Below, piece after piece: positions 24,282 to 54,400 of a stretch of DNA of 64,000 nt. Origin of the DNA: Macrostomum lignano (lineage: Eukaryota); NCBI GenBank assembly GCA_002269645.1, contig NIVC01002514.1:62001-126000 (forward strand). Reading direction: 5' to 3'. Under the pieces are notes generated by a model. The model was not told where the DNA came from. It saw only the letters and a program-made list of their open reading frames with translations, and searched no databases. The translations under genes and the position numbers were made by a program. Numbering within the stretch: the first letter of the stretch is position 1; every line of letters starts with the position of its first letter.

Positions 24282-27200
24282 TCAAGCTGTTGATCTCAGG
24301 CGGAAGTACGCTATTTCAGATGCTCCACCGCAAAATTCTATGAGATTTCCTAGGCATCGGAGCGAGCAACTTGTATTGGCCACCAATTTTAATGAACCTC
24401 CTGGTACTCTCTTTTCAGGCAAGTCCTCAGCACACATGCATTTGTTACCATTACCGATGGCGAAGTATTTCAATTTGCTGTAGAGATCACGCCTTATACA
24501 CTCGGTAGCGCAAATCAGGTGTGAGCCGTGCGACATCTCTTTGATGGCTATCGATTCGTACTCGGCCTCATAAAAGTCATTATATGCCATGTAGCATGCC
24601 TCCATAGAACCTGAAGCATTAATTAACACCAAGTGAGCAGATATACACAAACTAATGGTCATATTTTCAATAAAATCATGCAGAAATATCCAACAGATCA
24701 TGCATCAAAATGAACTCAAATTGTTACTCACTTGGAAGAACTGGATAGACCTTCGCTCCCTGCTTGAATTTATCTAAATGGGAAAATTGTTGGGGTTGGA
24801 ATCGGTAGAGAGCATTTTACATCAGCTTGAGCAGATTTCCAGATTAAATGGAGATAAAATGAGGGAGGAGAGCAGCTCAACTGGAAGCATTGCAAGACTC
24901 GTGAGAAGAATTGAAGTCTCATTGGAGAATCGTATACAATGGTAAGATGTGAACAAAGGCAAATTTCCAAAAATGAATACTCGCCTGTTTTCGGAGGAGT
25001 AAGTGTTGAACTAAGGCGAAAATATGCCAGATTATATAGACCACCGCACGATTCCCTGTGATTTCCTGGGCATCGGAGCGAGCAACTTGTATTGGCCACC
25101 AATTTTAATGAACCTCCTGGTACTCTCTTTTCAGGCAAGTCCTCAGCACACATGCATTTGTTACCATTACCGATGGCGAAGTATTTCAATTTGCTGTAGA
25201 GATCACGCCTTATACACTCGGTAGCGCAAATCAGGTGTGAGCCGTGCGACATCTCTTTGATGGCTATCGATTCGTACTCGGCCTCATAAAAGTCACTATA
25301 TGCCATGTAGCATGCCTCCATAGAACCTGAAGCATTAATTAACACCAAGTGAGCAGATATACACAAACTAATGGTCATATTTTCAATAAAATCATGCAGA
25401 AATATCCAACAGATCATGCATCAAAATGAACTCAAATTGTTACTCACTTGGAAGAACTGGATAGACCTTCGCTCCCTGCTTGAATTTATCTAAATGGGAA
25501 AATTGTAGGGGTTGGAATCGGTAGAGAGCATTTTACATCAGCTTGAGCAGATTTCCAGATTAAATGGAGATAAAATGAGGGAGGAGAGCAGCTCAACTGG
25601 AAGCATTGCAAGACTCGTGAGAAGAATTGAAGTCTCATTGGAGAATCGTATACAATGGTAAGATGTGAACAAAGGCAAATTTCCAAAAATGAATACTCGC
25701 CTGTTTTCGGAGGAGTAAGTGTTGAACTAAGGCGAAAATATGCCAGATTATATAGACCACCGCACGATTCCCTGTGATTTCCTGGGCATCGGAGCGAGCA
25801 ACTTGTATTGGCCACCAATTTTAATGAACCTCCTGGTACTCTCTTTTCAGGCAAGTCCTCAGCACACATGCATTTGTTACCATTACCGATGGCGAAGTAT
25901 TTCAATTTGCTGTAGAGATCACGCCTTATACACTCGGTAGCGCAAATCAGGTGTGAGCCGTGCGACATCTCTTTGATGGCTATCGATTCGTACTCGGCCT
26001 CATAAAAGTCATTATATGCCATGTAGCATGCCTCCATAGAACCTGAAGCATTAATTAACACCAAGTGAGCAGATATACACAAACTAATGGTCATATTTTC
26101 AATAAAATCATGCAGAAATATCCAACAGATCATGCATCAAAATGAACTCAAATTGTTACTCACTTGGAAGAACTGGATAGACCTTCGCTCCCTGCTTGAA
26201 TTTATCTAAATGGGAAAATTGTTGGGGTTGGAATCGGTAGAGAGCATTTTACATCAGCTTGAGCAGATTTCCAGATTAAATGGAGATAAAATGAGGGAGG
26301 AGAGCAGCTCAACTGGAAGCATTGCAAGACTCGTGAGAAGAATTGAAGTCTCATTGGAGAATCGTATACAATGGTAAGATGTGAACAAAGGCAAATTTCC
26401 AAAAATGAATACTCGCCTGTTTTCGGAGGAGTAAGTGTTGAACTAAGGCGAAAATATGCCAGATTATATAGACCACCGCACGATTCCCTGTGATTTCCTG
26501 GGCATCGGAGCGAGCAACTTGTATTGGCCACCAATTTTAATGAACCTCCTGGTACTCTCTTTTCAGGCAAGTCCTCAGCACACATGCATTTGTTACCATT
26601 ACCGATGGCGAAGTATTTCAATTTGCTGTAGAGATCACGCCTTATACACTCGGTAGCGCAAATCAGGTGTGAGCCGTGCGACATCTCTTTGATGGCTATC
26701 GATTCGTACTCGGCCTCATAAAAGTCACTATATGCCATGTAGCATGCCTCCATAGAACCTGAAGCATTAATTAACACCAAGTGAGCAGATATACACAAAC
26801 TAATGGTCATATTTTCAATAAAATCATGCAGAAATATCCAACAGATCATGCATCAAAATGAACTCAAATTGTTACTCACTTGGAAGAACTGGATAGACCT
26901 TCGCTCCCTGCTTGAATTTATCTAAATGGGAAAATTGTAGGGGTTGGAATCGGTAGAGAGCATTTTACATCAGCTTGAGCAGATTTCCAGATTAAATGGA
27001 GATAAAATGAGGGAGGAGAGCAGCTCAACTGGAAGCATTGCAAGACTCGTGAGAAGAATTGAAGTCTCATTGGAGAATCGTATACAATGGTAAGATGTGA
27101 ACAAAGGCAAATTTCCAAAAATGAATACTCGCCTGTTTTCGGAGGAGTAAGTGTTGAACTAAGGCGAAAATATGCCAGATTATATAGACCACCGCACGAT

Positions 27201-30200
27201 TCCCTGTGATTTCCTGGGCATCGGAGCGAGCAACTTGTATTGGCCACCAATTTTAATGAACCTCCTGGTACTCTCTTTTCAGGCAAGTCCTCAGCACACA
27301 TGCATTTGTTACCATTACCGATGGCGAAGTATTTCAATTTGCTGTAGAGATCACGCCTTATACACTCGGTAGCGCAAATCAGGTGTGAGCCGTGCGACAT
27401 CTCTTTGATGGCTATCGATTCGTACTCGGCCTCATAAAAGTCATTATATGCCATGTAGCATGCCTCCATAGAACCTGAAGCATTAATTAACACCAAGTGA
27501 GCAGATATACACAAACTAATGGTCATATTTTCAATAAAATCATGCAGAAATATCCAACAGATCATGCATCAAAATGAACTCAAATTGTTACTCACTTGGA
27601 AGAACTGGATAGACCTTCGCTCCCTGCTTGAATTTATCTAAATGGGAAAATTGTTGGGGTTGGAATCGGTAGAGAGCATTTTACATCAGCTTGAGCAGAT
27701 TTCCAGATTAAATGGAGATAAAATGAGGGAGGAGAGCAGCTCAACTGGAAGCATTGCAAGACTCGTGAGAAGAATTGAAGTCTCATTGGAGAATCGTATA
27801 CAATGGTAAGATGTGAACAAAGGCAAATTTCCAAAAATGAATACTCGCCTGTTTTCGGAGGAGTAAGTGTTGAACTAAGGCGAAAATATGCCAGATTATA
27901 TAGACCACCGCACGATTCCCTGTGATTTCCTGGGCATCGGAGCGAGCAACTTGTATTGGCCACCAATTTTAATGAACCTCCTGGTACTCTCTTTTCAGGC
28001 AAGTCCTCAGCACACATGCATTTGTTACCATTACCGATGTCGAAGTATTTCAATTTGCTGTAGAGATCACGCCTTATACACTCGGTAGCGCAAATCAGGT
28101 GTGAGCCGTGCGACATCTCTTTGATGGCTATCGATTCGTACTCGGCCTCATAAAAGTCATTATATGCCATGTAGCATGCCTCCATAGAACCTGAAGCATT
28201 AATTAACACCAAGTGAGCAGATATACACAAACTAATGGTCATATTTTCAATAAAATCATGCAGAAATATCCAACAGATCATGCATCAAAATGAACTCAAA
28301 TTGTTACTCACTTGGAAGAACTGGATAGACCTTCGCTCCCTGCTTGAATTTATCTAAATGGGAAAATTGTAGGGGTTGGAATCGGTAGAGAGCATTTTAC
28401 ATCAGCTTGAGCAGATTTCCAGATTAAATGGAGATAAAATGAGGGAGGAGAGCAGCTCAACTGGAAGCATTGCAAGACTCGTGAGAAGAATTGAAGTCTC
28501 ATTGGAGAATCGTATACAATGGTAAGATGTGAACAAAGGCAAATTTCCAAAAATGAATACTCGCCTGTTTTCGGAGGAGTAAGTGTTGAACTAAGGCGAA
28601 AATATGCCAGATTATATAGACCACCGCACGATTCCCTGTGATTTCCTGGGCATCGGAGCGAGCAACTTGTATTGGCCACCAATTTTAATGAACCTCCTGG
28701 TACTCTCTTTTCAGGCAAGTCCTCAGCACACATGCATTTGTTACCATTACCGATGGCGAAGTATTTCAATTTGCTGTAGAGATCACGCCTTATACACTCG
28801 GTAGCGCAAATCAGGTGTGAGCCGTGCGACATCTCTTTGATGGCTATCGATTCGTACTCGGCCTCATAAAAGTCACTATATGCCATGTAGCATGCCTCCA
28901 TAGAACCTGAAGCATTAATTAACACCAAGTGAGCAGATATACACGAACTAATGGTCATATTTTCAATAAAATCATGCAGAAATATCCAACAGATCATGCA
29001 TCAAAATGAACTCAAATAGTTACTCACTTGGAAGAACTGGATAGACCTTCGCTCCCTGCTTGAATTTATCTAAATGGGAAAATTGTTGGGGTTGGAATCG
29101 GTAGAGAGCATTTTACATCAGCTTGAGCAGATGTCCAGATTAAATGGAGATAAAATGAGGGAGGAAAGCAGCTCAACTGGAAGCTTAGAGGAATCGCATG
29201 TGGACTTCAGTTTGCGAATCTGGGATTCCAACCTGTTTAGTAGTAAAGCGTGTGTGTTTCTGTACCCATTTTCACCTCAGTCAGAACCGGCTCATTTCAC
29301 TGAATAGGTCGTACCTGCCTGATTTCTGAGAAAAGTGTTTTCTTTAGGCTGAAATACACTGTCCCATCCCCTGTGACCCGCAGTCATGCGCTGAGTTCTC
29401 TATCTGGCTTTCAAGGTAGAAGTGTTTTCCGGTCGCTGGCTTAAAGGTACAAGCTGATCGGGCATGGAGAGGGGGCTTACAGTATGTAGGGATATCGCTA
29501 TTGGAAAATCAACTTTAAAGCCGAAGTCTCCTCACCTGGATTTCTCAAAGCGTTGTGCTCTTTCGGATCCTTCTGCGTTTCCGCAAGTGCAACAAGCTTA
29601 GCTGAAAGGCGGCAGTACTATCGTGAATGCAGCTCAGCATGAGCACAAGCTAAACCGTTTGTCAAAGGCAAGAAAAGCTATTGAGAAACAAAAATGAAAA
29701 CAAAAAAATGCCAAACAAAATGAGGCCTCTCGATCCGGCCAAGAGGTCCTTTGGAACCTCACAATAGCAATTTGGCACGCTCAGAATTTGTGTCTTCCGA
29801 ACTCTCTACAGATAGTCGAATCGAATTTCCCTCTCTCTGCTCTCTCCTCTCTTTTCTCCTGCTTTTCTCTCTTCTCCTCTCTCCTATCTTCTTCTCTCCT
29901 TTTCTACTTTCTTTTTTCCATTTCCTCTCTCGCCTTTCTGCTCTCTCCTCTCTCTTCTTCTGCTTTTCTTCCTTTTCCCGTCTCCTCTCTCCTCTTCTCT
30001 CTTCTCACTTATTTCCTCGTTTCTTCTCTCCTGTCTCTCTTCTCTTTTCCCGCTCCTTTGTCCCCTCCTGTGACCCGCAGTCATGCGCTGAGTTCTCTAT
30101 CTGGCTTTTCAGGTAAAAAAGCTTTGGGTCCCTGGCTTAAAGGGTACAAGCTGATCGGGCATATAGAGGGGGGCTTACAGTATGTAGGGATATCGCTATT

Positions 30201-31837: not shown

Positions 31838-32112
31838 GGTCGCTTTCATAAGACCGAAATTTCACAACGCCGAAAACTATTGCACGATCCTTCACAAGAC
31901 CGAAACTTCATAAGACCGAAATTTCACAACGCCGAAAACTCAAAATACAGGGCCTTTCACAAGACCAAAATTTCACATCGTAGAAAACTTAATACAATAA
32001 GGAGCATGCAGAATTTTCGGCGTTGTGAAATTTCGGTCTTAATGAAGTTTTGGTCTTGTGAAGTATGGTGTTTCGGCGTTGTGAAATTTCGGTCTTAAAA
32101 TCCCCCCCCCCC
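31838..32112. mobile_element. MULE/Foldback-type palindromic MITE (275 bp)
   Basis: Inverted blocks taagaccgaaatttcacaacgccgaaa / tttcggcgttgtgaaatttcggtctta; 9-bp TSD ctagaaaag at 31829-31837 and 32113-32121. Confidence 0.8.
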
Positions 32113-35089: not shown

Positions 35090-35545
35090 AACAAAAAAGC
35101 CCTACATAAGTTGATTACGCTACATATCGGCAAAAATCACTTCGAACTTTTCTAGACCACACAATGCATAATCTAATCTAACCCTAACCCTAACCCTAAT
35201 CTAATATCTGCCTAAAAAAGGCTAGATTCTATAAACATAGCCGTCGAAATGAGATAACTCTAAATTTAGTAGAAGCAAAAGCTCATTACGATACATATCG
35301 GCAAAAATAGTTACAAACCTTCAGGCTGGTAAAAATGTTTTCGATACATATCGGCAAAAAAACTTTACAAACCTTCGGGCTAAAACTATTTCCGCTACAG
35401 ATCGGTAAATAACAAACTTACGGGCTAATAAAATTATTTTCGATACATATCGGCAAAAAACCCTACAAACCTTCAGGCTAAAACTATTTCCGCTACATAT
35501 CGGTAATACGGGCTAATAAAACTATTTTCGATACATATCGGCAAA
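35090..35545. repeat. Degenerate repeat with tttcgatacatatcgg subunits and a (CCCTAA)3 motif
   Basis: Repeated catatcgg(c/t)aa units; related motif at 37360-37800. Confidence 0.75.
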
Positions 35546-35646: not shown

Positions 35647-37315
35647 TCAAGCCTCCGAAGTGGAGCCTCTCCTGTCCTGCTGCTGAGATCGCTTGGCAGC
35701 CAGCAGGCGCTGCTGCAAGCCAGCGGCGAATCTCTTCGCTCCCGGGCCCGTGAGCGACTGCGTCGCCGACACTCCCGGCAGAGCCGACGACGACGACGGA
35801 GCGCCGACGGCAGCGGCACCGACGCCGGTCTCAATAGCATTCTCGTGCTCGCTCTCCGACATGCGACGTCGAATGAGAGGCCGACGCGGCCTGAGCAGCA
35901 TGCCTTCGAGTAGGCGCATTGTGTCGGACTCGGACGCCGAACCGGCGCTCGAAGTTCGACGCCGATTGGCACCGGGATGCTGCGGCTGATGAAGAGATGA
36001 GAATAGCGAGGCTCTTTAGTCTTTATGTCGCGCTAGGTAGCATGGTCTCTAAAGGCCAGAGTCTTAAAGAGGCCCCACAACAGCTCATTTAGGTCCCGTG
36101 ATGATTTATTTATAGGCTTCACGAAGACACATTTAGGTCGAAAGAGGATTCCTATAAGTCCCGTGAGGACACATTTAGATAGGTCTTGTGAGGACTCATT
36201 TATAGGATTCGTGAGGAGTCATTTAGATACCGTGAGGAGTCATTTAGATCCCGTGAGCAGTCATTTAGTTCCCGTGAGGACTTTTTTATAGGCTTCGTGA
36301 GGACTCATTTAGGTCCCGTGAAGAGTAATTTAGGTCTTGCGAGAGCTCATTTTTATGATTCATGAGGAGTCATTTAAATCCCGTGAGGAGTCATTTAGGT
36401 CCCGTGATGACACATTTAGATGGCGTGAGGACTCATTTAGGTCCCATGAGGACTCATTTAGGTCCAGTAAGGATTCATTTAGGTCCAGTAAGGACTCATT
36501 TAGGTCCAGTAAGGACTCATTTAGGTCCAGTAAGGACTCATTTAGGTTCAGTAAGGACTCATTTAGGTCCCATGAGGACTCATTTAGGTTCAGTAAGGAC
36601 TCATTTAGGTCCAGTAAGGACTCATTTAGGTCCAGTAAGGACTCATTTAGGTCCAGTAAGGACTCATTTAGGTTCAGTAAGGACTCATTTAGGTCCCATG
36701 AGGACTCATTTAGGTTCAGTAAGGACTCATTTAGGTCCAGTAAGGACTCATTTAGGTCCAGTAAGGACTCATTTAGGTCCAGTAAGGACTCATTTAGGTC
36801 CAGTAAGGACTCATTTATAGGCTTCGTAAGGACTCATTCAGGTCTCATAAGATGTGACTGCGTACACCCGTGTGGGTCTCAGCTCTTACCTGCTGACCAT
36901 GATCGGCCGGCGCTTTGATCAGTTCGCACTGCACACCGGCATCGGACATTGTGGCGACTGTCATTGCGGCAGCGGCGGCGGCGGCGGCAGCGGCCTGGCC
37001 GTTGGCCGGAGTAGCAGCGGCGCCAGTGGCCTTCTCGATGTCGACAGCGCCACTGTCTGCGCCAGCGGCGGTGCCGTCAGCTTCAAGATGACCGGCGCCG
37101 CCAGGGCCGCTTAAAATTTTATGACGCTTAGCGCGTCGCAAGCCAGGATCGTCAATATACAGCAGCAGAGCTTGTACCAAGGCGAACACCAGAGTGCCTA
37201 GTAAGGGGGCGGTGATGTTTACCCACAGGGGCCAGTAGGCCAGGTCCTGCGGCCTCGGAGGCGTCTGAGTAGTTGTCCAGGCAACGCTCGGCGAGTTTGG
37301 AGCTTCGGTAGCCAT
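35647..37315 (-). CDS. Hypothetical single-pass membrane protein (paralog A), ~254 aa, 2 exons
   Basis: Exons 37315-36890 (cag|gtaaga) and 35985-35647, phase 0; hydrophobic segment YWPLWVNITAPLLGTLVFALVQALLLYI followed by DDPGLRRAKRHK. Confidence 0.75.
36080..36840. repeat. Intronic 21-bp minisatellite (gtaaggactcatttaggtcca)
   Basis: Tandem units in the intron of paralog A. Confidence 0.93.
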
Positions 37316-37359: not shown

Positions 37360-37800
37360 AGTGTTTTCGATACATATCGGTAGCCAGTTTGGGGATCATA
37401 TGATTCAACTAGCTAGGACGAGTGTAAATATAGTTTTTCGATACATATCGGTAGCCATTTTTGGGATCATATGATCCAATTAACTAGAACGAGTGTAAAT
37501 ATAGTCTTTGATACATATCGGTAGCCATTTTAGGGATGGTATAGTTCAACTAGCTAGGAATAGTTTAAACATAGTTTTCGATACATATCGGTACCCATTT
37601 TAGGGATCACATGATCCAATTAGCTAGGACGAGTGTAAATATAGTCTTCGATACATATCGGTAGCCATTTAGGGATCACATGATTCAATTAGATAGAACG
37701 AGTGTAAATATAGTCTTCGATACATATCGGTAGCCTTTTAGGGATGGTATGGTTCAACTAGCTAGGAAAAGTTTAAACATAAACAATAAACAAACTAGCT
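37360..37800. repeat. ~62-bp degenerate tandem repeat (ttttcgatacatatcggtagcc...)
   Basis: About 7 units between paralogs A and B. Confidence 0.85.
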
Positions 37801-38209: not shown

Positions 38210-39847
38210 CTAAACAGCGGATTCACAATTAGAGACAATGCGCTTGTTGGTAGCGATTGCACTACAAGATCTGGGCTTAGGACGAGGAGGACGAGTGTAC
38301 ACTGGGGCTGGGTGAGAGCCGGAGGGGTCTGGCTGGGGACGAGTGTACACTGGGGCTGGGTGAGAGCCGGAGGGGTCTGGCTGGGGACGAGTGTACACTG
38401 GGGCTGGGTGAGAGCCGGAGGGGTATGGCTGGGGACGAGTGTACACTGGGGCTGGGTGAGAGCCGGAGGGGTATGGCTGGGGACGAGTGTACACTGGGGC
38501 TGGGTGAGAGCCGGAGGGGTCTGGCTGGGGACGAGTGTACACTGGGGCTGGGTGAGAGCCGGAGGGGTCGGGCTGGGGACGAGTGTACACTGGGGCTGGG
38601 TGAGAGCCGGAGGGGTCGGGCTGGGGACGAGTGTACACTGGGGCTGGGTGAGAGCCGGAGGGGTCTGGCTGGGGACGAATGTACACTGGCGCTGGGTGAG
38701 AGCCGGAGGGGTCGGGCTGGGGACGAGTGTACACTGGGGCTGGGTGAGAGCCGGAGGGGTCGGGCTGGGGACGAGTGTACACTGGGGCTGGGTGAGAGCC
38801 GGAGGGGTCTGGCTGGGGACGAGTGTAAACTGGGGCTGGGTGAGAGCCGGAGGGGTCGGGCTGGGGTCGAGTGTACACTGGGGCTGGGTGAGAGCCGGAG
38901 GGGTCGGGCTGGGGACGAGTGTACACTGGGGCTGGGTGAGAGCCGGAGGGGTCTGGCTGGGGACGAGTGTAAACTGGGGCTGGGTGAGAGCCGGAGGGGT
39001 CGGGCTGGGGACGAGTGTACACTGGGGCTGGGTGAGAGCCGGAGGGGTCTGGCTGGGGACGAGTGTACACTGGGGCTGGGTGAGAGCCGGAGGGGTCGGG
39101 CTGGGGACGAATGTACACTGGGGCTGGGTGAGAGCCGGAGGGGTCTGGCTGGGGACGAGTGTACACTGGGGCTGGGTGAGAGCCGGAGGGGTCGGGCTGG
39201 GGACGAGTGTACACTGGGGCTGGGTGAGAGCCGGAGGGGTCTGGCTGGGGACGAGTGTACACTGGGGCTGGGTGAGAGCCGGAGGGGTCGGGCTGGGGAC
39301 GAGTGTACACTGGGGCTGGGTGAGAGCCGGAGGGGTCTGGCTGGGGACGAGTGTACACTGGGGCTGGGTGAGAGCCGGAGGGGTCGGGCTGGGGACGAGT
39401 GTACACTGGGGCTGGGTGAGAGCCGGAGGGGTCTGGCTGGGGACGAGTGTACACTGGGGCTGGGTGACGCATGCCGCTGGAACGCGAATAGTACACTGGA
39501 CGTAGATGAGGATTAGTTGACGATCTTTGCACTCGCCGTCGAGAAGGCAAGTGAGCTCGGTGAGCCCCAGAGCAAATGCCATTCGACTGCTTTCTAACAC
39601 CATTTCTGCCGGCTTTTAAAGTGCCTAGTTTGCTATCGCGAATTTTACGGTTGACAGAAGTTTTTCGTTGCTGCTTAATTCGCCTGAGCCCGGGATCGTC
39701 AATGTATAGCAGGAGCAATTGGACAAGTACAAAGGCCAGAGTGCCCAGCAACGGGGCGGCAACGTTTACCCACAGAGGCCAATAAGCCGCATCTTGGGGT
39801 CTGGGCGTCTTTGAAGTTGTCCAAGTCTCCGCTGCTTCCGTAAGCAT
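38210..39847 (-). CDS. Hypothetical single-pass membrane protein (paralog B), 545 aa, with 24 x 16-aa HPAPVYTRPQPDPSGS repeats
   Basis: Uninterrupted ORF from ATG. N-terminus PRPQDAAYWPLWVNVAAPLLGTLAFVLVQLLLLYIDDPGLRR is homologous to paralog A. The 48-bp repeat is in frame and flanked by unique coding sequence on both sides. Confidence 0.72.
   Translation of the reverse strand: MLTEAAETWTTSKTPRPQDAAYWPLWVNVAAPLLGTLAFVLVQLLLLYIDDPGLRRIKQQRKTSVNRKIRDSKLGTLKAGRNGVRKQSNGICSGAHRAHLPSRRRVQRSSTNPHLRPVYYSRSSGMRHPAPVYTRPQPDPSGSHPAPVYTRPQPDPSGSHPAPVYTRPQPDPSGSHPAPVYTRPQPDPSGSHPAPVYTRPQPDPSGSHPAPVYTRPQPDPSGSHPAPVYTRPQPDPSGSHPAPVYIRPQPDPSGSHPAPVYTRPQPDPSGSHPAPVYTRPQPDPSGSHPAPVYTRPQPDPSGSHPAPVYTRPQPDPSGSHPAPVYTRPQPDPSGSHPAPVYTRPQPDPSGSHPAPVYTRPQPDPSGSHPAPVYTRPQPDPSGSHPAPVYIRPQPDPSGSHPAPVYTRPQPDPSGSHPAPVYTRPQPDPSGSHPAPVYTRPQPDPSGSHPAPVYTRPQPYPSGSHPAPVYTRPQPYPSGSHPAPVYTRPQPDPSGSHPAPVYTRPQPDPSGSHPAPVYTRPPRPKPRSCSAIATNKRIVSNCESAV
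38290..39467. repeat. 48-bp coding minisatellite
   Basis: gacgagtgtacactggggctgggtgagagccggaggggtc(t/g)ggctggg x ~24.5, substitutions only. Confidence 0.97.
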
Positions 39848-40450: not shown

Positions 40451-41099
40451 CATCTGTTTCGGAATACTTGGTTGGTTATTATAAAATATGCTCAATTACT
40501 TATTATACAAAATAAAACAGACGAGCAGACACAACAATGTACTTTTTACTTCTAACACAAAAAATCATTTACAACGCAAAATGTTTCGTACATACTACTC
40601 ATGAGAACCAATGTTTCCAACAAATTAAAAATTTTAATTAAATACACATTACTTAGAGAGTCACTATTAATTAATAAAAAGTAAATTAGATTAGGGAAGC
40701 AAAACTTATTAGAAGCCAAAATACCCAAGACTGACATTATAACGGAAAAAAACAGGAGACTTTCTATTTAAAGTTTAGTAGTATCGTGAAGAAATTACTA
40801 GATTATCAAATCAGTTTCCAAAACAAATATTTAATCAAGCAAAACGAGAGTTAAGAGAAATATAGGTAATAAGACCCTTTGGCAGACAATTAATGTCAGT
40901 AAGGAAAATGTAACAAAACCAATCGATAAACTAACAGACATTGCTTAACAATTCAATAGCACGTTGCCAAACATTAATAAATATGTGATGCTACGGCTCC
41001 CACAAGTAGCTAAACTTGAGATAAAAGAGCGAGTGTGCACTGACGTGGGGCTGGGGTCAGGGACTGTACATTGTGAGGTGGTGGGTGGGGTCAGGGAGA

Positions 41100-43430
41100 G
41101 AGGGAGAGAGTGTACACTGCGAGGTGGGGCCGGGGCTGGGATCAGGGAGAGTGTACACTGCGAGGTGGGGCCGGGGCTGGGATCAGGGAGAGAGTGTACA
41201 CTGCGAGGTGGGGCCGGGGCTGGGATCAGGGAGAGTGTACACTGCGAGGTGGGGCCGGGGCTGGGATCAGGGAGAGTGTACACTGCGAGGTGGGGCCGGG
41301 GCTGGGATCAGGGAGAGAGTGTACACTGTGAGGTGGGGCCGGGGCTGGGATCAGGGAGAGAGTGTACACTGCGAGGTGGGGCCGGGGCTGGGATCAGGGA
41401 GAGTGTACACTGCGAGGTGGGGCCGGGGCTGGGATCAGGGAGAGAGTGTACACTGCGAGGTGGGGCCGGGGCTGGGATCAGGGAGAGTGTACACTGCGAG
41501 GTGGGGCCGGGGCTGGGATCAGGGAGAGAGTGTACACTGCGAGGTGTGGCCGGGGCTGGGATCAGGGAGAGTGTACACTGCGAGGTGGGGCCGGGGCTGG
41601 GATCAGGGAGAGAGTGTACACTGCGAGGTGTGGCCGGGGCTGGGATCAGGGAGAGTGAACACTGCGAGGTGGGGCCGGGGCTGGGATCAGGGAGAGAGTG
41701 TACACTGCGAGGTGGGGCCGGGGCTGGGATCAGGGAGAGTGTACACTGCGAGGTGGGGCCGGGGCTGGGATCAGGGAGAGTGTACACTGCGAGGTGGGGC
41801 CGGGGCTGGGATCAGGGAGAGAGTGTACACTGCGAGGTGGGGCCGGGGCTGGGATCAGGGAGAGTGTACACTGCGAGGTGGGGCCGGGGCTGGGATCAGG
41901 GAGAGAGTGTACACTGCGAGGTGGGGCCGGGGCTGGGATCAGGGAGAGTGTACACTGCGAGGTGGGGCCGGGGCTGGGATCAGGGAGAGAGTGTACACTG
42001 TGAGGTGGGGCCGGGGCTGGGATCAGGGAGAGAGTGTACACTGCGAGGTGGGGCCGGGGCTGGGATCAGGGAGAGTGTACACTGCGAGGTGGGGCCGGGG
42101 CTGGGATCAGGGAGAGTGTACACTGCGAGGTGGGGCCGGGGCTGGGATCAGGGAGAGAGTGTACACTGCGAGGTGGGGCCGGGGCTGGGATCAGGGAGAG
42201 TGTAAACTGCGAGGTGGGGCCGGGGCTGGGATCAGGGAGAGAGTGTACACTGTGAGGTGGGGCCGGGGCTGGGATCAGGGAGAGAGTGTACACTGCGAGG
42301 TGGGGCCGGGGCTGGGATCAGGGAGAGTGTACACTGCGAGGTGGGGCCGGGGCTGGGATCAGGGAGAGTGTACACTGCGAGGTGGGGCCGGGGCTGGGAT
42401 CAGGGAGAGAGTGTACACTGCGAGGTGGGGCCGGGGCTGGGATCAGGGAGAGTGTACACTGCGAGGTGGGGCCGGGGCTGGGATCAGGGAGAGAGTGTAC
42501 ACTGCGAGGTGGGGCCGGGGCTGGGATCAGGGAGAGTGTACACTGCGAGGTGGGGCCGGGGCTGGGATCAGGGAGAGTGTACACTGCGAGGTGGGGCCGG
42601 GGCTGGGATCAGGGAGAGAGTGTACACTGCGAGGTGTGGCCGGGGCTGGGATCAGGGAGAGTGTACACTGCGAGGTGGGGCCGGGGCTGGGATCAGGGAG
42701 AGAGTATACAGCGCGGTGGGGCCGGGGCTGGGATCAGGGAGAGAGTGTACACTGCGAGGTGGGGCCGGGGCTGGGATCAGGGAGAGTGTACACTGCGAGG
42801 TGGGGCCGGGGCTGGGATCAGGGAGAGAGTGTACACTGCGAGGTGGGGCCGGGGCTGGGATCAGGGAGAGTGTACACTGCGAGGTGGGGCCGGGGCTGGG
42901 ATCAGGGAGAGTGTACACTGCGAGGTGGGGCCGGGGCTGGGATCAGGGAGAGTGTACACTGCGAGGTGGGGCCGGGGCTGGGATCAGGGAGAGAGTGTAC
43001 ACTGCGAGGTGGGGCCGGGGCTGGGATCAGGGAGAGTGTACACTGCGAGGTGGGGCCGGGGCTGGGATCAGGGAGAGAGTGTACACTGCGAGGTGGGGCC
43101 GGGGCTGGGATCAGGGAGAGTGTACACTGCGAGGTGGGGCCGGGGCTGGGATCAGGGAGAGAGTGTACACTGCGAGGTGTGGCCGGGGCTGGGATCAGGG
43201 AGAGTGTACACTGCGAGGTGGGGCCGGGGCTGGGATCAGGGAGAGAGTGTACACTGCGAGGTGTGGCCGGGGCTGGGATCAGGGAGAGTGTACACTGCGA
43301 GGTGGGGCCGGGGCTGGGATCAGGGAGAGAGTGTACACTGCGAGGTGGGGCCGGGGCTGGAATCAGGGAGAGAGTGTACACTGCGAGGTGGGGCCGGGGC
43401 TGGGATCAGGGAGAGTGTACACTGTGAGGT
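41100..43430. repeat. G-rich 41/43-bp minisatellite (gagagtgtacactgcgaggtggggccggggctgggatcagg +/- ga)
   Basis: About 55 tandem units, two length variants. Confidence 0.97.
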
Positions 43431-43440
43431 GAAAGCAATT

Positions 43441-44711
43441 GTGAGCCAAAAGTTTCCGGAATTTTTTCGAATCGAACTTTTAGTGAATTTTTGTCTATGG
43501 AAAAGCTTAAAAGCAGCAACCATCTACTATGCTGTTGGCCAGCCTTATCATCACTCTTTAGCTTAGCATCGATCAGTTTCCCAGACCCTGCCTACATAAG
43601 CCAGCAAACGCATTCAATGGAACTGCCAAGAACTGAATGGCAAGCAATTCTGCTCAGCCACTTTCATGCGGGACGCAACGCAGCCGAGGCACATCGCGAG
43701 TTGTTGCAGCTGATGGGCCCACATGCACCCTCCAAGTCATCGGTGTACGAGTGGTTCTCTTGCTTTGCTGAGGAGAACTATGAGCTGCAGGACAAGCCGA
43801 GGTCAGGCCGACCCCCTGCTGCTGATGGCAATGCCGTTCGCCAAGCCCTTGAGGACACTCCGGACTACAGCGTGCGCAAGCTGCCAGCTGCTACTGGGGT
43901 GTCCTGTGGCACGGTCCGGCGGAGCCTGCATGCTGCGGACAAGGTGCCGAAGAAGCCTACTCTGGTGCCCCATGAGCTGACACCTCAGCAACTGAGAGCC
44001 AGGGTGGATGCGGCGACTTCGAATCTTCGCCAGGCCGGTTCGCCAAACTTTCTCAAGTCGATAATTGCTCAAGACGAGAAGTGGGTCTGCTATGAGAACC
44101 CAAGCACATCAGCCGTCTGGGTCGATGCTTCTGAAGAACCACCCAGCTGCCCAATGCGGAACCCCCACTGCGGCAAGGAGCTGCTCTCTTTCTGGTTCTG
44201 CTCGTCTGGCCCTGTTTTCTGGGAGGTCATCCCGCGTGGCATGGCTGTGAACGCGGAGGTGATCTGCAGCGAACTGTAGCAGGTTGCCCGTTTGCTGCGA
44301 TCCGTGTGCCCGGGACACCGCGACAAGGTGCTCCTCTTCGACAATGCGCGGCCTCACAAAGCAAGACTCACCCAGGCCAAGCTGGCAAGCCTGGGCTTCA
44401 GTGTTTTGCCCCACCCACCATACTCGCCAGACCTCTCGCCATGCGACTACCGTGTGTTCAGGTCTCTCCAGAGCTTTTGTGATGAACAGCGGTTCGCCAA
44501 CAAGCAACATGTGGAGCAGGCAGTGCAGAAATGGATAGATTCAAGGCCTGCGAGCTTCTGGAGGGAGGGGATTGAGGCATTGCCAGCAAGATGGGAGAGG
44601 GTCAGGGCCTTGAATGGCAAGTACATCACATCGCTGTAAACTGTTTGTACTTGACACTATTTGTTATAGTTTTCAATTGATCAAATTCCGGAAACTTTTG
44701 GCTCACCCTAA
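43441..44711 (+). mobile_element. Mariner (Tc1/mariner DD34D) transposon, left TIR tip degenerate
   Basis: TIR gtgagccaaaagtttccggaatt / aattccggaaacttttggctcaccctaa followed by TA; internal transposase. Confidence 0.95.
43617..44639 (+). pseudogene. Mariner transposase with one in-frame TAG (44277-44279)
   Basis: HTH region (...PRSGRP), QDEKWV, FDNARPH, HPPYSPDLSPCDY; 34 residues between the second and third catalytic D; both halves in the same frame. Confidence 0.93.
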
Positions 44712-45885: not shown

Positions 45886-48325
45886 TTACTTTCTTCGATT
45901 ATTAAAGGGTCCACCGCCGCCGCCACCGCCGCGCCAACTACCCCGGTAGTGCTGCCGAGACGGTTGAAAACCAGCCGATGGCATGGGAGGCCCGCCGCCG
46001 CCTCGATAAATAGCAGTAGAAGCCGCGTGCTGCTGCTGCTGCTGCTGTCGCTGAGCCGGCTGAACTCCCACCGTTCCAATGGCGGGTATGGGAGGACCGC
46101 CGGCTTCGCCTCCTCCGTTGCCGCCTATAGAAAAAGTTTGTGACATTATAGAAGACTAATAAAATAAGTCCAAATGAAAAACGTTTCAAAAAAATGAAAC
46201 AATACAAATGGCAACAAATTCTGATGCAATATAAACCAATACCGTTGAATCCTCGGTGACCCGACCAGTAATGACCTAGCAATCCGATAGATTTATTAAA
46301 AATCGCAGATAATTTTTAATTACTTCATTACTTACAGTTAGACAATTCGAATCATATTTCATATCAAAGTAAAATTTCCTTCCACATTAACTATACAATT
46401 AATCGTGCACTTGAATAGCCTTAGAAATAGATTCTTTTTAAAGTACATTAGATCCTGAACTTAAAAGTATCTTAAACTGTCAGGGGAAGGAGGTGGAATG
46501 TAGTAGAATGTCAGGGTAGGCAGTTGAGTGTCAGGGTAGGCAGTTGAGTGTCAGGGTAGGCAGTGGAGTGTCAGGGGAGGATTGGAGGAAGTGGAGTGTC
46601 AGGGGAGGCAGTGGAGTGTCAGGGTAGGCAGTGGAGTGTCAGGGGAGGCAGTGGAGTGTCAGGGGAGGCAGTAAAGTGTCAGAGGAGGCAGTAAAGTGTC
46701 AGAGGAGGCAGTAAAGTGTCAGGGGAGGCAGTGGAGTGTCAGGGGAGGCAGTGGAGTGTCAGGGTAGGCAGTGGAGTGTCAGGGGAGGCAGTGGAGTGTC
46801 AGGGGAGGCAGTGGAGTGTCAGAGAAGGTAGTGGAGTGTCAGAGAAGGCAGTGGAGTGTCAGAGAAGGCAGTGGAGTGTCAGAGAAGGCAGTGGTGTCAG
46901 AGAAGGCAGTGGAGTGTCAGGGGAGGCAGTGGAGTGTCAGGGAGGCAGTAAAGTGTCAGGGAGGCAGTGAAGTGTCAGAGGAGCCAGTGAAGTGTCAGAG
47001 GAGGCAGTGGAGTGTCAGGGGAGGCAGTGGAGTGTCAGGGAAGGCAGTGGAGTGTCAGAGGAGGCAGTGGAGTGTCAGGGGAGGCAGTGGAGTGTCAGGG
47101 GAGGCAGTGGAGTGTCAGGGAAGGCAGTGGAGTGTCAGGGAAGGCAGTGAAGTGTCAGGACTTTTGGATTATTTTGAGTCTGCACTTGCTCAGAATACTT
47201 GTCTCAAAGCACTGAATTTGCGCAGTTAATCTGTCCTTATCGACATTATCACCCCACCGCAGCTCTCGGTAGCCAATCTGCAGCAGTTCAGAGAAGAAGT
47301 CAGTCAGTTTTGTTGCAAAAGCTGATAACAGCACAATAACATAACTGGCATAGAAGCGTCGCCCTTGCTGTTACTATGGTTACGCCCATGAGCGGCGAAA
47401 AACTTTCTTTACTCAGTATCTTAGTATCCTTGGTCGCATGGCTGCTACAAGGGGGCCGTAGCCAATGCTCTGATGTTCCAGCGGCCCAGGCTCGATTCCA
47501 AGTGCAGTCACATTAATTTGGGGCTGAATTGGAATCTCGGCTTGGCTCTGCTCGTGCAATTAACGGCCTTAAGAGCCAACCCCCCAAGGCGCAGTGAAGT
47601 GTACATGCCTAACGATAAATAAAGTTAGGGCCGCTGTGCACTCCTGTGTGAGTGTGTGCCTGTGCGTATGACTGCGTACGTATCCGCGCGCTTGTGTGCC
47701 TGCTCAGGGGAGTCGGCGGAATGGGCAGCAATGCCTCTCGCCGGTTGTGTGACAATGTCGATTAAAGTGCGCCAGGGTGCACGCAGCCACCCAGCCTCTA
47801 ACTAACTAAAGAACCACATTCACAGTATCTACCTGCCAGTGTTGACAACAGCCGCCATTGCTGGGGCGGCAGCTGCTGGGGTGGCGGCTGCTGCGACTGC
47901 TGGGTCGGCTGTGGGCCCCAGGTAAAGACAGGGAACGCCTGCGGACTGCCGCGCAGCCTTAGCTCCTCAGGACCGGCCGGCAAGATGGCCAGCGGGATGA
48001 GCAGGTCGGGCAGGCCGGCAGCTCGTAGCACCACTGGCTGGTAGGCGGCCGATGGAGCCGGGGATGCTGGGGCATCGGCGCTAGGCATCGTTGATGATGA
48101 AGCAGAGCCGAGGCTGGACTGGCGCATGTAGAGAATGGCCGGGCCGCCAGTGGGACCGCTCTCTGCCGGGGCCAGCTGGGGCCGCGACTGCTGGTCGATT
48201 TGGACCTGGTCGGGAGGCAGGGCAGCGCTGGGTTGGATGGGGTGACTGATAAAAGAGGATTTGGTAGAACGAATAATAGAACGGACAATGACAGGGGATA
48301 GCAAACAGAAAATTACCGGCTAGAC

Positions 48326-48406
<81 letters not shown>

Positions 48407-48431
48407 GACAGACAGACAGACAGAGACAGAC

Positions 48432-48464
<33 letters not shown>

Positions 48465-51400
48465 GACAGACAGACAGACAGACACAGCAGGCCGGTCCGA
48501 ACCTGCTCCCGCTGGAAGTCCTTCATAGGCGTCCTGATGCCGTCCATCCGGTTGGCCTGCCGCATCTCGTGGCCGCAGTCCCTGGCTAAGTGGCCGATCT
48601 TGCCGCACCGCTTGCAGCCGCGGTCTTTCGGCACGTCGCCGGGGCAGAGGCTGGACGAAAAAAGGAACTCCTTCATCGCCCGATCGGGCAGGGGCTCGGC
48701 AGGCGGGGTGCACCAGCGCTTCAATGCGTTGAAAAATGTGGTCAGAATGAACCAGGCCATCTTCTTGGTCATGCCGCTAGCTAGATTGTGGCTCAATTCG
48801 AACGGATCCTCGATAGCCAGAGGCGTAGACCAGAGCTTCTCTAGCCTTAGCAACGGCCCGCTCCGTCGGATAGTGACAACTCGCGAGCGCCAATCGAACT
48901 CTAGATAATAGCGCAGGAATCCTAGCCAGAGCTCGCCTATGCTTTTGTCGGACCTGGGCCGCCAGCGTTGCGCAATCTCGGCTCGGTCGTCCTGGAACCA
49001 GGCGTTCCAGCCGTCAATCTGACGCTGCGGTGCCGGCCTCTCCGGCCAGCCATCGTACAGCTCTTGCAGGCAGGGCACCAGGCCCTCGGACTGCAAGTAG
49101 TGCAGAGTGAGAATCACGTACGTGTAGGAGGACAGGCTGCCGCGGCTGGCGTCACCGATGCCGCAGGATTTGGCGAACACCTGGCCAGAAAGGTGCAAGA
49201 GTTACTGTAGATTAGGAGTGAAGGATCAGAGAGTGAGAGACATGTGAACAATCCATGAGTATATTTGTTTGTAAGTATATAAGCATAGGAGAACGAAGGA
49301 CGAAAACAAAAGTTAAGGACCGGAAGTGACATATTGAAAGTGACGGATCGGAAAGGAGTGCACATGACGGGAGTTACAGTGACAGACAGGGAGTGACAAT
49401 GACAGCCGGGGAGTGACAGTGACAGACAGGAAGAGAGTGACAGTGACAGACAGGAAAGGAGTGACAGTGACAGACAGGAAAGGAGTGACAGTGACAGACA
49501 GGAAAGGAGTGACAGTGACAGACAGGAAAGGAGTGACAGTGACAGACCGGAAGGGAGTGACAGTGACAGACAGGAAGGGAGTGACAGTGACAGACAGGGA
49601 GTGACAGTGACAGACAGGGAGTAACAGTGACAGACAGGAAGGGAGTGACAGTGACAGACAGGAAGGGAGTGACAGTGACAGACAGGAAGGGAGTAACAGT
49701 GACAGACAGGGAGTGACAGTGACAGACAGGGAGTAACAGTGACAGACAGGGAGTAACAGTGACAGACAGGAAGGGAGTGACAGTGACAGACAGGAAGGGA
49801 GTGACAGTGACAGACAGGAAAGGAGTGACAGTGACAGACCGGAAGGGAGTGACAGTGACAGACAGGAAGGGGATGACAGTGACAGACAGGGAGTGACAGT
49901 GACAGACAGGGAGTAACAGTGACAGACAGGAAGGGAGTGACAGTGACAGACAGGAAGGGAGTAACAGTGACAGACAGGGAGTGACAGTGACAGACAGGGA
50001 GTAACAGTGACAGACAGGGAGTAACAGTGACAGACAGGAAGGGAGTGACAGTGACAGACAGGAAGGGAGTGACAGTGACAGACAGGGAGTGACAGTGACA
50101 GACAGGAAGGGAGTGACAGTGACAGACAGGGAGTGACAGTGACAGACAGGGAGTGACAGTGACAGACAGGGAGTGACAGTGACAGACAGGGAGTGACAGT
50201 GACAGACAGGGAGTGACAGTGACAGACAGGAAAAGAGTGACAGTGGCAGACTAAGAGTGACAGACTAAAAGGGAGTGACACATCGGATATGATGGATCAG
50301 AAAGGAGTGACAGATGAGAGTAAAACATTGACAAGAGAGGAGTGAGTTAGTGGCAAACCAGAATGAGCTGACAAACAGGTCTTAAAGAAATGAGCACTTA
50401 CCTTAACAATGTAGCCCAGATCTCGCACCCGCCTATCCAGCATAGCATAGGTGCGCAGCATTTTAGTGTTCGCCGATGCCAGCCTATTGTACAAGCTGAC
50501 GTCGCCTTCGCAATCAAATTTACGATGCCGAAATTTCACAATCGGCACCTTGGCCTGAGTGATTGGCAGGACATTGTAAAACTGCCTACTAGGCGCGCCT
50601 TTGAGAATTTTGGCCACTTTAGTAATTAAACTGGCCACAGGTGTCCGGAGTTGGGACATGTCCGGACAGCTATCGAATGTCAGACACATATCCAGATCGC
50701 TGTCCCGAAATCCGAATCCGTTACAACAGGAGCCGAAAAAGTCCAGCTGAGCATCGGGAAAGTGCACCCTTAGCAGGGCGAGAATTTCGTCTTTAACTTC
50801 GGCTCGTTTCTTAATATCCTGATCTCGTTCTTCGAAATCGCCCGGCACGGTGACCAATAGCTTGGTGAGATTGGCCAGGTGATGAGGCGGACAGGGCCCG
50901 GGCAGCTGGCTAGGCGACACTGCGAACTCGTACTCTTTACAGGCGTCTTTCAAGTGTCCAGCTTTGCCGCAGCTGACGCACTGCAGCTGAGGCGGTGGCG
51001 CCCGGACTAAGCAGCGTTTGTCCAAGGTGTAACGCAGGCTCGACTTGGCGACGCCTTCTACTGAGGCGCGGTTATAGTAGTCCGGCTCTGTTGAGTCCTG
51101 AGGTGGGCGGAGTGCGAGATGGGAGGCTTAGGAAACAAACACACAATGCAGTTCGGGTCCTTTGACACCCAAGAAAACCATGGAAGGATTCCGTCATTGA
51201 CCCAGAAAAGGACCATGGAAGGATTCTAGCAATGACCCATATGAGGACCCTGGTAGGATTCCAGCAATGACCCATATAGGGACCCTGGAAGGGCTCCTAC
51301 AAAGACCCAGAAGTGGACCATGGAAGGGTTTCATCATTGACGCAGAAAAAGAGGACCATGTAAGGGTTCCAGCAATGACCCATAAGAGGGACCATGGATC

Positions 51401-54400
51401 CAGTAATGACCCAGGAGAGGACAATGGAATGGTTCCAGCAAAGACCAAGAAGAGGACGGAAGGGTTCTAACAAAGACCCAGAAGACCATGGAAGGGTTCC
51501 AACCATGACCCAGAAGAGGACCATGGAAGGGTTCCAGCAAAGACCCAGAAGAGGACCGTGGAAGGGCTCCAGGAAAGAGGTAGAAGATCGTAGAAGGTAT
51601 ACTATAACAAAGTGAACCTAGATTCTGAAAAAGCAGAGTCCACACTCCAAATACTTATGTAAACTATTGCTCACCAAGACACCACCTTCGGCAGCCAATT
51701 CTTCATCAATCTCAGTATCCTCCAGCTCATCAGTCGGATCAACAGACTCTTCGCCTTCAACATCGTCAACATTATCGCCGTCGTCTTGAAAGTCGTCTTC
51801 CTCCATAGGGACATCGTCAACGATGGACAAATTAACGGCGTCAAGATCGTTGCCAACAACGGCAGCAGCGGCGTCAGGAATTTTATCGACGCTAGCCGAC
51901 ACCGAGTTCAAACAGTCGGCAACTAGATTGTCGACAATCTGACGGGCAAACTCTTCAATAGAAACTGGCGCCGTTAATTGCAACGGAGGAGGCACTGGCA
52001 AGGCCAGTTCGCTGTCGTTAACAGAGACGGTAGCGGTGTTGGTTGTGGTAGTCCGGCGACGCCTGCGCATCAACAGTCGTTGCTGACGCCGACGACGCGC
52101 CGAACGGACAGCGACGCGAACTATAGCGGCTAATTGAGCCGGCGTAGCGTTTGAATTGTCGCGGGCAAGATGCCGGCGCACAATGGCGGAGTACAGGCGC
52201 TGCACCAGCCAGCGATGAAAGTCAACAGTCGGCTGCGGATTGGACTTGGCAGCATCGCCAGTTGACGCAGTTGCACCTACGGCCAGATCCGGTTCGGTCA
52301 GATCCAGACTCGAACACGTCACTTTATCGTTAGGCGAGAAGACTTTACTAAGAGCAGCGTTGACAATGTCTATGGTAGAAACGACACCGTCAGCTGGTAT
52401 TGGCACGCTATCGACAAGCTCTCTAGCTGCCAGACTAACATCGCCAAGATCAAACAGTGGAGTTATCTTCAATTTCTGAGTCTTTACCGAGGCGCTGCTA
52501 CTGCAGCTGGTCTTCAATTTAAAATGCTGGTAGAGAGGTCCAGTGGCTAGCTGGGGCACCGCATAGTAGCGGTAAGCGGAACGAATCTGCATAAGAATAT
52601 AGTCTAGCAATTCGTTGGTTGCAACACCTCTGGCCATATTCATTCTAGCCCGAAATGGATCCTCAATATTAATTCGTTTCGGCGTCCAATCTTTAGCCGA
52701 GCATAGCACCGGCTCCGATTTGGTGATGCAAACAACGGAATCCTGCTGAGGCACGGAATAATAACGCAGCAAATCAATCCACAATCGACCAAATTTAGCC
52801 GGACTACTATCGGCATCAGCCGGCTGCCAATACTTGGCTAAACAGTCCAGTCCGGCGTTGAAATACTTCAATTGACCGTCGTCAAAGTTTACAGTAGTAA
52901 AACAATCGCTCGGCGCTTCAGCGATTTCGTTCAATACGGGCAGCAAGCCGACCCGTTGCAGATAGTGCACCACCATCAGGTAGTAGGCGTGCGGCGGCAG
53001 AGTGCCTCTATCCGGTGCATCAGCCTTGGCCAAGTTGGCTACAGAGCGCAGCGCTGAGCACAATCGTCGGCAACGATTGTCAAGTTTAACGTAAGCGCCA
53101 ATTAGATTAGACGTGTGAACCCGATGACCGGTGTTAACGCTGAATTGGTAAGATACACCTGACGAATCTTTGCACAATATTGACGGTGAAAGATTTTCAG
53201 CCTGTGATGTGACCTCGGCGAATAGTTTAGTAGCAGCGGATGCGTCTTCACCATTGCCAGTTGTGGCTGTGGTCAGGGCGGCAAGGCAGCGATCAAATGC
53301 ATTATTAAACTCGGCGTCAATGCGTTTATTTTCCGAAGCGACGGCCGAGGCGTCCACTAATGTTAAACTAAGATTGACGTCGCTGTTATTAGTTGCTAGG
53401 CTATAAGCCAGGCTGCCATAGAGGCGAGCATAACTACCTGAGCCCCCAGAGCTAATGCATTCGATGGCTCGGTTGGCTATTGAGAGACGGCGTTCAACTT
53501 CATCGCTATTCAGCATCAGAGAGTTGGTGTGCTCAACTAAATGCTCACCGACGCCCTCCGCGTGAGACTGAGTCGGAGACGGAGCAGCAGCAACAAAGCG
53601 TTGCAGAGCCTGCGGGTGAAATGCGACGGGATAATTAGAGCGAAAGCATGAGCTATGGGATAATATATCAATTTATTGGAATTGGGAATTCCAGATTTAG
53701 GTGTCGCAATTTTAATTTATAGGATTAGAATAAATATAGGACAGGGAATTATGTAAAGGATTGGCATTTTTATTTATAGGATTGGGATTTCTGTTCATAG
53801 GATTGGGACTTCTGTATATATGATGGGGATTTCTGTTTATAGGGTTGAGATTTCTGTTTATAGGGTTGGGATTTCTGTTTATAGGATAGGGATTTCTGTT
53901 CATAGGATTGGGATTTCTGTCTATAGGATGGGGATTTTATTCTATCGGATCGGGATTTCAGGATCGGGATCGGGATTGTCTATAGGATTGGGATTTCTGT
54001 TTATAGGATTGGGACTTCTGTCTATAGGATTGAAATTTCGGTTTATAAGATTGGGACTTCTGTTTATAGGATTGGGATTTCTGTTTATAGGATTGAAATT
54101 TTGGTTTATAGGATTGGGATTTCTGTTTATAGGATTGAAGTTTCTGTTTATAGGATTGGGATTTCTGTTTATAGGATTGGGATTTCTGTTTATAGGATTG
54201 AAATCTCGGTTTAAAGGATTGGGATTTCTGTTTATAGGATTGAAGTTTCTGTTTATAGGATTGGGATTTCTGTTTATAGGATTGGGATTTGTATATGGGA
54301 TTGAAATTTCTGTTTATAGGATTGGGACTACTGTCTATAGGATAGGGATTTTATTTTATTGGAATGGGATTTCATTATATGGGATTCGGATTTCTGTTTA

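Follow-up and report, generated by a model that had tools for sequence, protein, structure and literature searches.

Does a long open reading frame (ORF) that runs through a minisatellite belong to a gene with a coding repeat, or is it the accidental extension of an exon into repetitive DNA? The question is raised by a 64,000-nucleotide stretch of the genome of the flatworm Macrostomum lignano (contig NIVC01002514.1, positions 62,001 to 126,000; hereafter the window), in which an unannotated ORF of 545 aa on the minus strand at 38210..39847, here called gene A, joins a predicted transmembrane (TM) segment to a tail of 48-bp tandem repeats. The genomic locus L002, taken from NIVC01002514.1 (GCA_002269645.1, Mlig_3_7), is identical to the window in reverse complement and includes this copy of gene A. 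The evidence somewhat favours the reading that gene A is a real single-pass membrane protein whose cytoplasmic, disordered tail would hold a translated variable-number tandem repeat (VNTR), which would vary both the number of PVYTRP motifs and the distance from the membrane to the C-terminus.

Reading frame and predicted topology of gene A

The gene A ORF, which is probably a single exon and is identical in L002, begins with an ATG, and an in-frame stop codon lies 12 nt upstream. The encoded sequence runs from a short N-terminus through a single TM helix and a basic linker to the repeat and a unique end of 25 residues. The conserved N-terminal domain (codons 1-62; 39662..39847, minus strand) comprises a short ectodomain, the motif WPLWVN, the TM helix and a stop-transfer sequence, DDPGLRRxK. 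The helix is predicted at residues ~23-49 (39701..39781, minus strand), with a Kyte-Doolittle maximum of 2.37 in the best 19-residue window (29-47), and is the single hydrophobic segment of the protein. It is followed by a basic unique linker (codons 63-127; 39467..39661, minus strand) that ends in a decayed repeat unit, HLRPVYYSRSSGMR. The net charge is -1 on the N-terminal flank of the helix, +3 on its C-terminal flank and +14 in the linker, from which an N-out/C-in orientation with a cytoplasmic tail can reasonably be inferred.

Tandem Repeats Finder (TRF) gave the array of 48-bp units the coordinates 38289..39467 and counted 24.6 copies, at 97% matches and without indels. In the register of the ORF the array occupies 38288..39466 on the minus strand, and its 24 full units, HPAPVY(T/I)RPQP(D/Y)PSGS, run from 39466 to 38315 and are followed by a partial unit, HPAPVYTRP. 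Such an array is far beyond chance. Only six sites vary among the 24 full units; in the ORF frame four of these variants are synonymous and two nonsynonymous (p=0.054), and in the other two frames zero of six and two of six are synonymous. Decayed units at both edges of the array stay in frame, HLRPVYYSRSSGMR on the upstream side and RPPRPKPRS on the downstream side. The whole protein contains 31 Tyr residues and 25 YxxP motifs, and inspection of the repeat unit for SH3 (PxxP), canonical PPxY, YxxΦ and NPxY motifs found none of them. A Pfam scan of the protein returned the PXPV repeat family PF12778 with a whole-protein score of 37.5 bits (cutoff 23.1) and no individual stretch that passes, which is a compositional match.

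Unique sequence flanks the array on both sides, with 127 codons before it and 25 after it. The C-terminal 25 codons (PRPKPRSCSAIATNKRIVSNCESAV) and the stop codon lie at 38210..38287 on the minus strand, and the protein ends in ...VSNCESAV. We take the terminal ESAV to fit the class I PDZ-ligand pattern S/T-x-V-COOH, as a candidate ligand.

The first-pass annotation of this locus had described an ORF with a TM helix, a basic segment and a cytoplasmic tail, and had counted 24 full units and a partial one free of frameshifting indels; the hydrophobicity profile, the charge distribution and the repeat analysis bear out these descriptions, the topology being a reasonable reading of the charges. 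The unique RPVYYSR before the array, which had been thought to resemble the repeat, looks like a decayed unit. The further statement that unique coding sequence lies on both sides of the array holds for the 5' side; on the 3' side it rests on the weak similarity to an Owenia protein described below.

The N-terminal domain and its relatives

One indication that gene A is, or has been, a protein-coding gene comes from a tandem paralogue downstream. Gene B (BOX15_Mlig005328g3, PAA57246.1; 35647..37315, minus strand) shares 67% identity with gene A over the first ~64 residues (tblastn, E=3e-25). The DNA similarity of the two genes begins at the ATG and ends after RRxK, and the upstream DNA cannot be aligned. 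Within the shared domain of ~62-64 codons the Nei-Gojobori method gave a saturated pS of 0.70, a pN of 0.21 and a dN/dS of 0.12, and the differences fall at codon positions 1, 2 and 3 in the ratio 17/11/37. By these measures the N-terminal domain of gene A is under purifying selection and is genuine coding sequence, in agreement with its initial designation as a membrane-protein gene.

Gene B consists of two exons. Exon 1 (36890..37315; ORF 36845..37315) ends in the donor CAG/GTAAGA, exon 2 (35647..35985) encodes a tail with SETMRLLEGMLLRP and ATQSLTG motifs and no Tyr, and the intron between them (35986..36889) contains a 21-bp minisatellite at 36214..36844, all on the minus strand. The splice predicted from the DNA (donor 36889, acceptor 35986) matches the database proteins P0001 and P0004 at ...ADHGQQ/PQHPGANRRR.... 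The junction is thus confirmed and the 21-bp minisatellite is therefore intronic.

A profile of the N-terminal ~90 residues of gene A was searched against 1.84 billion representative proteins and matched three, at 3e-41, 4e-14 and 9e-5: P0001 (PAA48584.1, M. lignano BOX15_Mlig009747g2), a UniRef protein of M. lignano (P0002) and a protein of Owenia fusiformis (P0003, CAH1785837.1), which also matched gene A by BLASTP (E=2e-11). P0002, together with P0006, P0007 and P0008, represents gene C (BOX15_Mlig009953g2), a third M. lignano paralogue. As judged by these similarities, gene A belongs to a small, uncharacterised family of WPLWVN single-pass membrane proteins that comprises genes B and C and Owenia CAH1785837.1. 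All three relatives have an N-terminal ectodomain, TM helix and basic stop-transfer segment homologous to those of gene A. In contrast to gene A, none of the three WPLWVN relatives has a tandem-repeat tail; genes B and C carry a different conserved tail (AVQC[ED]L, SETMR[LM]LEGMLLRP, ATQSLTG) that is encoded by a second exon. The sequence VNVA is common to gene A and the Owenia protein, and VNIT is found at this site in genes B and C, which suggests that gene A represents an old lineage rather than a recent relic.

The resemblance to the Owenia protein appears to extend beyond the membrane. A juxtamembrane SVNxxI is common to the gene A linker and P0003, and the gene A tail, reduced to one unit, is weakly colinear with that of Owenia, the aligned points being SVNxxI, TNP, VY and PKxxS...V.NC-end (global z=3.5, p=0.0013). 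In an alignment anchored at the end, the C-terminal 24 aa of gene A are weakly similar to the C-terminus of the Owenia protein (PKSPSAISITSTTLLVNNCTL; p=0.004), and the DNA that follows the array matches that C-terminus in the ORF frame only. The frame of the putative VNTR is joined to coding sequence on the 5' side, by selection and an open linker; on the 3' side this weak similarity is the indication. The Owenia protein has a single ...RVTVYG... that aligns to the pre-array RPVYY of gene A, and the repeat may have been seeded by one VY in an ancestor.

Copy-number variation of the array

Three genomic copies of the locus carry the array at two different lengths, with 24.6 copies of the unit in L002 and 8.6 in both L001 and L003. 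The L003 copy has eight full units and one partial unit in an intact ORF of 289 aa, exactly 16 units (768 nt) fewer than L002. This difference fits the "tunable" character that had been proposed for the tail and, at the level of the DNA, the expected repeat-number polymorphism in multiples of 48 bp. The possibility that the array is an assembly artefact was rejected, as three different contigs contain it, in two lengths.

The copies differ by 7 of 884 positions in gene A and its 3' flank, a value near that of the gene B exons (3 of 765), and the intron, the upstream DNA and the DNA between the arrays differ by 2-3% plus gaps, which is above the value for gene A; this comparison speaks for a coding gene. 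The divergence of ~1% between the copies is too low to measure selection. The short copies carry a His-to-Pro change (CAC>CCC) that creates a run of five C, and L001, the copy on NIVC01004114.1, has one C fewer than L003 (L001 7213..7225).

On the favoured reading, gene A would be an unannotated, probably intron-less member of the WPLWVN-TM-DDPGLRR family, anchored N-out/C-in, whose disordered, basic, Pro-rich cytoplasmic tail contains an in-frame 48-bp coding VNTR. The array would grow and shrink in whole units, a DNA-level process for which slippage or unequal exchange is the presumed mechanism. The genomic copies would accordingly place 9 or 25 PVYTRP motifs between a membrane anchor and a C-terminal end that are both conserved. 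The tail would most plausibly act as a variable-length, multivalent spacer or platform of linear motifs. The sequences show the array, its in-frame ORF, selection on the N-terminal domain, the variation in copy number and the relatedness of the arrays as DNA; we infer in this model the transcription of gene A, the translation of its repeat, the topology, and any binding partners.

Coding versus non-coding repeat

Several observations weigh against a coding repeat, and the first of them is that an open frame is weak evidence in DNA of this kind. In M. lignano, 15% of the genome consists of simple and tandem repeats (PMC5730564), and the window holds 83 TRF rows of minisatellites. Nine of its 20 arrays of at least 300 bp have one or more open frames, and open array-frames number 23 of 120. 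The C-rich 48-bp unit is itself free of stop codons in five of six frames, which makes the continuity of the frame automatic, so the length of the gene A ORF alone proves little. The window also supplies direct examples of the alternative: an eIF1A exon (914..1188, plus strand) ends in CTG/GTAAGT and its ORF nevertheless reads on for ~300 codons through an intronic array, and the minisatellite of gene B sits in an intron.

The comparison of the genomic copies adds further points of the same kind. The differences between copies in the unique parts of gene A are six nonsynonymous (D19E, N66K, C92R, H>P, T>I and R>P) to one synonymous, a ratio compatible with neutrality. In L001, a 1-nt deletion in the C5 run of the last partial unit shifts the frame of the last ~35 codons. 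The assembly was built from PacBio continuous long reads (CLR) with Canu and polished with Pilon, which makes a homopolymer error within a repeat plausible, and the deletion may plausibly be either a real lesion or such an error. The expectation that the array is free of frameshifts thus holds for the window and for the intact L003 copy and fails, possibly through an assembly error, for L001. No gene-A-like protein was found among the 1.84 billion representative proteins, and, finally, the p-values that support a coding tail are individually weak (0.001-0.05) and post hoc.

Taken together, these points make it possible, if distinctly less probable, that the array is a non-coding minisatellite in an untranslated region, an intron or intergenic DNA, that function is or was limited to the N-terminal exon, which might for instance be a relic duplicate or have a 3' partner that went unrecognised, and that the ORF results from a unit that is free of stops and divisible by three in length. 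The sister arrays described below, which have the same palindromic core and are clearly non-coding, fit this explanation, as does the absence of gene A from the annotated genes of the GenBank record. Against it stands the N-terminal domain: purifying selection has acted on it since an old duplication (dS is saturated), and gene A therefore needs some coding 3' end. The linker of 65 codons has no stop codon in the ORF frame, compared with two and four in the other frames, and the chance of its being open was 0.04 in shuffles. The synonymous bias of the array variants and the Owenia-like C-terminus after the array are both confined to the ORF frame. The codon-usage log-odds, trained on ~1,800 codons from the window, show a slight preference for the ORF frame, and the frames within the unit are not separable by this measure.

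The gene A ORF offers no usable splice donor. Throughout the ORF, the sequence GT[AG]AG is absent, in contrast to the gene B and eIF1A exons, which end in canonical GTAAG donors. The only GTAA sites are TGG/GTAAAC, inside the TM segment, and ACC/GTAAAA, both of which are poor donors whose phase does not fit gene B exon 2. The idea that the repeat is an intron was therefore rejected as the leading one. A role of the gene A exon as gene B's alternative first exon was also rejected, since there is no phase-0 donor and the annotated gene B proteins give no support.

According to Wudarski et al., the annotation was stripped, ahead of its submission, of transcripts that overlap annotated repeats (PMC5730564), so it is uninformative that gene A is missing there. 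A protein homology search with the full ORF gave no matches; the same word-indexed search also missed, with a 632-aa ORF as query, a TUTase that is annotated in the GenBank record, so that negatives of this search are weak. An exact look-up of the 545-aa product returned no record. No mention of the locus tags Mlig005328, Mlig009747 and Mlig014639 was found in papers or in the PMC5730564 supplements.

If the repeat is translated, gene A would be a gene that public annotation missed owing to a repeat filter, and a clean case of a minisatellite captured in a conserved membrane-protein gene, where it multiplies a short linear motif while its sister arrays remain non-coding. Macrostomum, for which transgenesis and RNAi are available, would then be tractable for studying the effects of VNTR length on a multivalent cytoplasmic tail. 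If the repeat is not translated, the locus serves as a caution: with ~15% of the genome in simple and tandem repeats and one fifth of array frames open, long ORFs fused to real exons can arise by chance.

A shared palindromic core and the tyrosine motif

The 48-bp unit has relatives among its neighbours at the DNA level. A non-coding 41/43-bp minisatellite at 41047..43431 (minus strand) has both CCCAGCCC and the palindrome AGTGTACACT in common with the 48-bp unit, in a different frame, and a 70-bp minisatellite between genes A and B (37366..37781, minus strand) has TACACTCGTCC in common with it. The sequence shared by the three arrays is in the same orientation. The 10-bp palindrome AGTGTACACT (with CCCAGCCC) occurs 74 times in the window compared with 0.03 expected, and only within 38294..39455 and 41109..43423, that is, in the 48-bp array and its 41/43-bp neighbour. 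The latter has a 13-nt insertion that moves the palindrome to another frame, and it contains stop codons in all six frames. The Tyr codon of the repeat, TAC, is the centre of the palindrome GTGTACAC, which argues that the repeated VY is at least partly a consequence of the DNA repeat core and not of selection for Tyr. The palindrome AGTGTACACT may also be a shared recombination or hairpin core of the local minisatellite family.

These relations bear on a more specific version of the coding repeat, by analogy with p130Cas, in which the 25 VYTRP sites would be phosphorylated by Src/Abl-type kinases and recruit Crk/Nck-type SH2 adaptors as a tunable scaffold. We consider such a phosphotyrosine scaffold unlikely. 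In its favour, the tail, which is predicted to be cytoplasmic and disordered, carries 25 YxxP motifs, and Abl is known to prefer [ILV]YxxP, which Val at -1 and Pro at +3 of gene A fit. The same two positions recur in the p130Cas consensus DVYDVPP (PMC13151057). In choanoflagellates, TM proteins that carry YxxP repeats on the cytosolic side have been suggested to be partners of the Crk SH2 domain, and the recognition of pYxxP by Crk is pre-metazoan (PMC5043372). However, the Tyr codon is part of a palindrome that a non-coding array shares in another frame, and the motif may therefore be a by-product of the DNA repeat. The tail of paralogue B lacks Tyr, and YGLQ stands at the aligned site in the Owenia protein. 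Where Cas has Asp/Gln at +1 and Val/Thr at +2, gene A has Thr and Arg, and acidic residues are absent upstream of the Tyr. The near-identity of the units, moreover, implies a very recent expansion rather than a long-selected scaffold. The fullest form of the proposal, in which a palindrome-centred minisatellite would create and resize, in the cytoplasmic tail of a flatworm membrane protein, a series of 9-25 identical [V]YxxP sites for phosphorylation and SH2 docking in the manner of p130Cas, with valency set by a hypervariable VNTR, must be thought still more doubtful. Were it true, signalling valency could differ between alleles or chromosome copies.

The reverse topology, in which the repeat, with five Pro, two Ser and one Thr per 16 residues and its weak compositional PXPV match in Pfam, would form an extracellular mucin-like or extensin-like stalk, is highly improbable, as the positive-inside rule strongly favours a cytoplasmic tail, no signal peptide is present and Ser/Thr account for only 3/16 residues per unit.

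Genomic neighbourhood

Gene A lies in a repeat-rich region in which the minus-strand order is a TUTase gene, a mariner relic, the 41/43-bp array, a 20-bp array, gene A, the 70-bp array, gene B and a gene with WSC repeats. The TUTase/Cid1-family gene (45886..55117, minus strand) has an annotated product of 1,472 aa with domains of the MTPAP-like, PAP_assoc and zf-CCHC types, and its ORFs are broken by minisatellites at 49381..50251 and 51177..51572. A TUTase paralogue adjoins gene C in the locus L004, and the block formed by a TUTase gene and gene B or C is thus an old duplication. No second, older copy of gene A was found in the TUTase-gene C locus, including the sequence upstream of gene C. 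The relic between the TUTase gene and the 41/43-bp array (43491..44279, plus strand) is of a mariner/Mos1-type transposase with HTH_48 and a partial DDE domain.

Downstream of gene B, six near-identical tandem units of 716 bp (24770..28997, minus strand) each contain an ORF of 215 aa in which Pfam recognises a WSC domain (1e-7). They fall within a GenBank-annotated gene of >1,029 aa (L002 16650..21663) and resemble a coding macrosatellite. The 53-bp (35289..35503) and 70-bp (37366..37781) arrays that flank gene B have a near-palindromic motif in common, CCGATATGTATCG.

Other repeats are scattered through the window. At the plus-strand eIF1A-like ORF (914..2194), the chance read-through covers an intronic 22/28-bp minisatellite at 1251..2107. 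Two 28-bp minisatellites, at 3143..3628 and 56630..56983, have consensus sequences that are exact reverse complements (TGCTGGGCCAGCCTCCCAGATCCTCAGT) and lie inverted, 53 kb apart. Shorter inverted pairs of short-unit arrays are found at 14117..14796 and 15500..15722 and at 31890..31977 and 32011..32064; they resemble foldback elements, an example of the paired units being TCTCGTTTCGCCGA and TCGGCGAAACGAGA. Interstitial telomere-type (CTAACC)n repeats occur at 18208, 19595, 20981 and 22326, with a period of 1,387 bp inside a larger tandem repeat, and are followed by a long GA-rich tract at 22846..23549. Rfam and tRNA scans of the window gave no match.

Comparison with known systems

A coding VNTR in a membrane protein is a known kind of object; this particular gene is unannotated and lineage-specific. 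Coding VNTRs of membrane and secreted proteins include the 60-bp VNTR of MUC1. Gene A resembles them in a unit length that is a multiple of three, an array in frame between unique flanks, near-identical units and changes of copy number by whole units. It differs in that its repeat, a putative coding one, is predicted to be cytoplasmic rather than part of a glycosylated ectodomain.

The substrate domain of p130Cas/BCAR1 contains 15 YxxP motifs (PMC13151057, PMC5043372). As in gene A, it is Pro-rich, presumably disordered and has many YxxP motifs with Val at -1 and Pro at +3. Gene A is, in contrast, membrane-anchored, has the core YTRP instead of YDVP or YQxP, and is built of identical units instead of diverged motifs. 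The Cas family architecture further includes SH3, Ser-rich and FAT-like domains (PMC5043372), none of which was found in gene A with Pfam; lacking the SH3 and FAT-like domains, gene A falls outside the Cas family.

The architecture of gene A is also that of choanoflagellate TM proteins such as Salpingoeca PTSG_05573, which has 10 YxxP motifs (PMC5043372), with the same arrangement of a TM segment followed by a cytosolic YxxP run. Their motifs are of the YDVP type, peptides from them bound the Crk SH2 domain in vitro, and some of the proteins carry ectodomains and SH2-like domains (PMC5043372). The likeness is one of architecture, and the gene A motif is YTRP.

In outline, the predicted gene A product also resembles the vertebrate transmembrane adaptors LAT, PAG/Cbp and SIT (PMC2213442, PMC3342071), with a short ectodomain (~22 aa, compared with 16 aa in PAG), a single TM helix and a long tail that carries several Tyr motifs. 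Unlike these adaptors, gene A has no juxtamembrane CxxC palmitoylation motif (there is no Cys in residues 49-91) and no sequence homology to them, and its motifs are tandemly identical. The LAT/PAG adaptors are thus a functional class that gene A resembles in outline, and not a homologous family.

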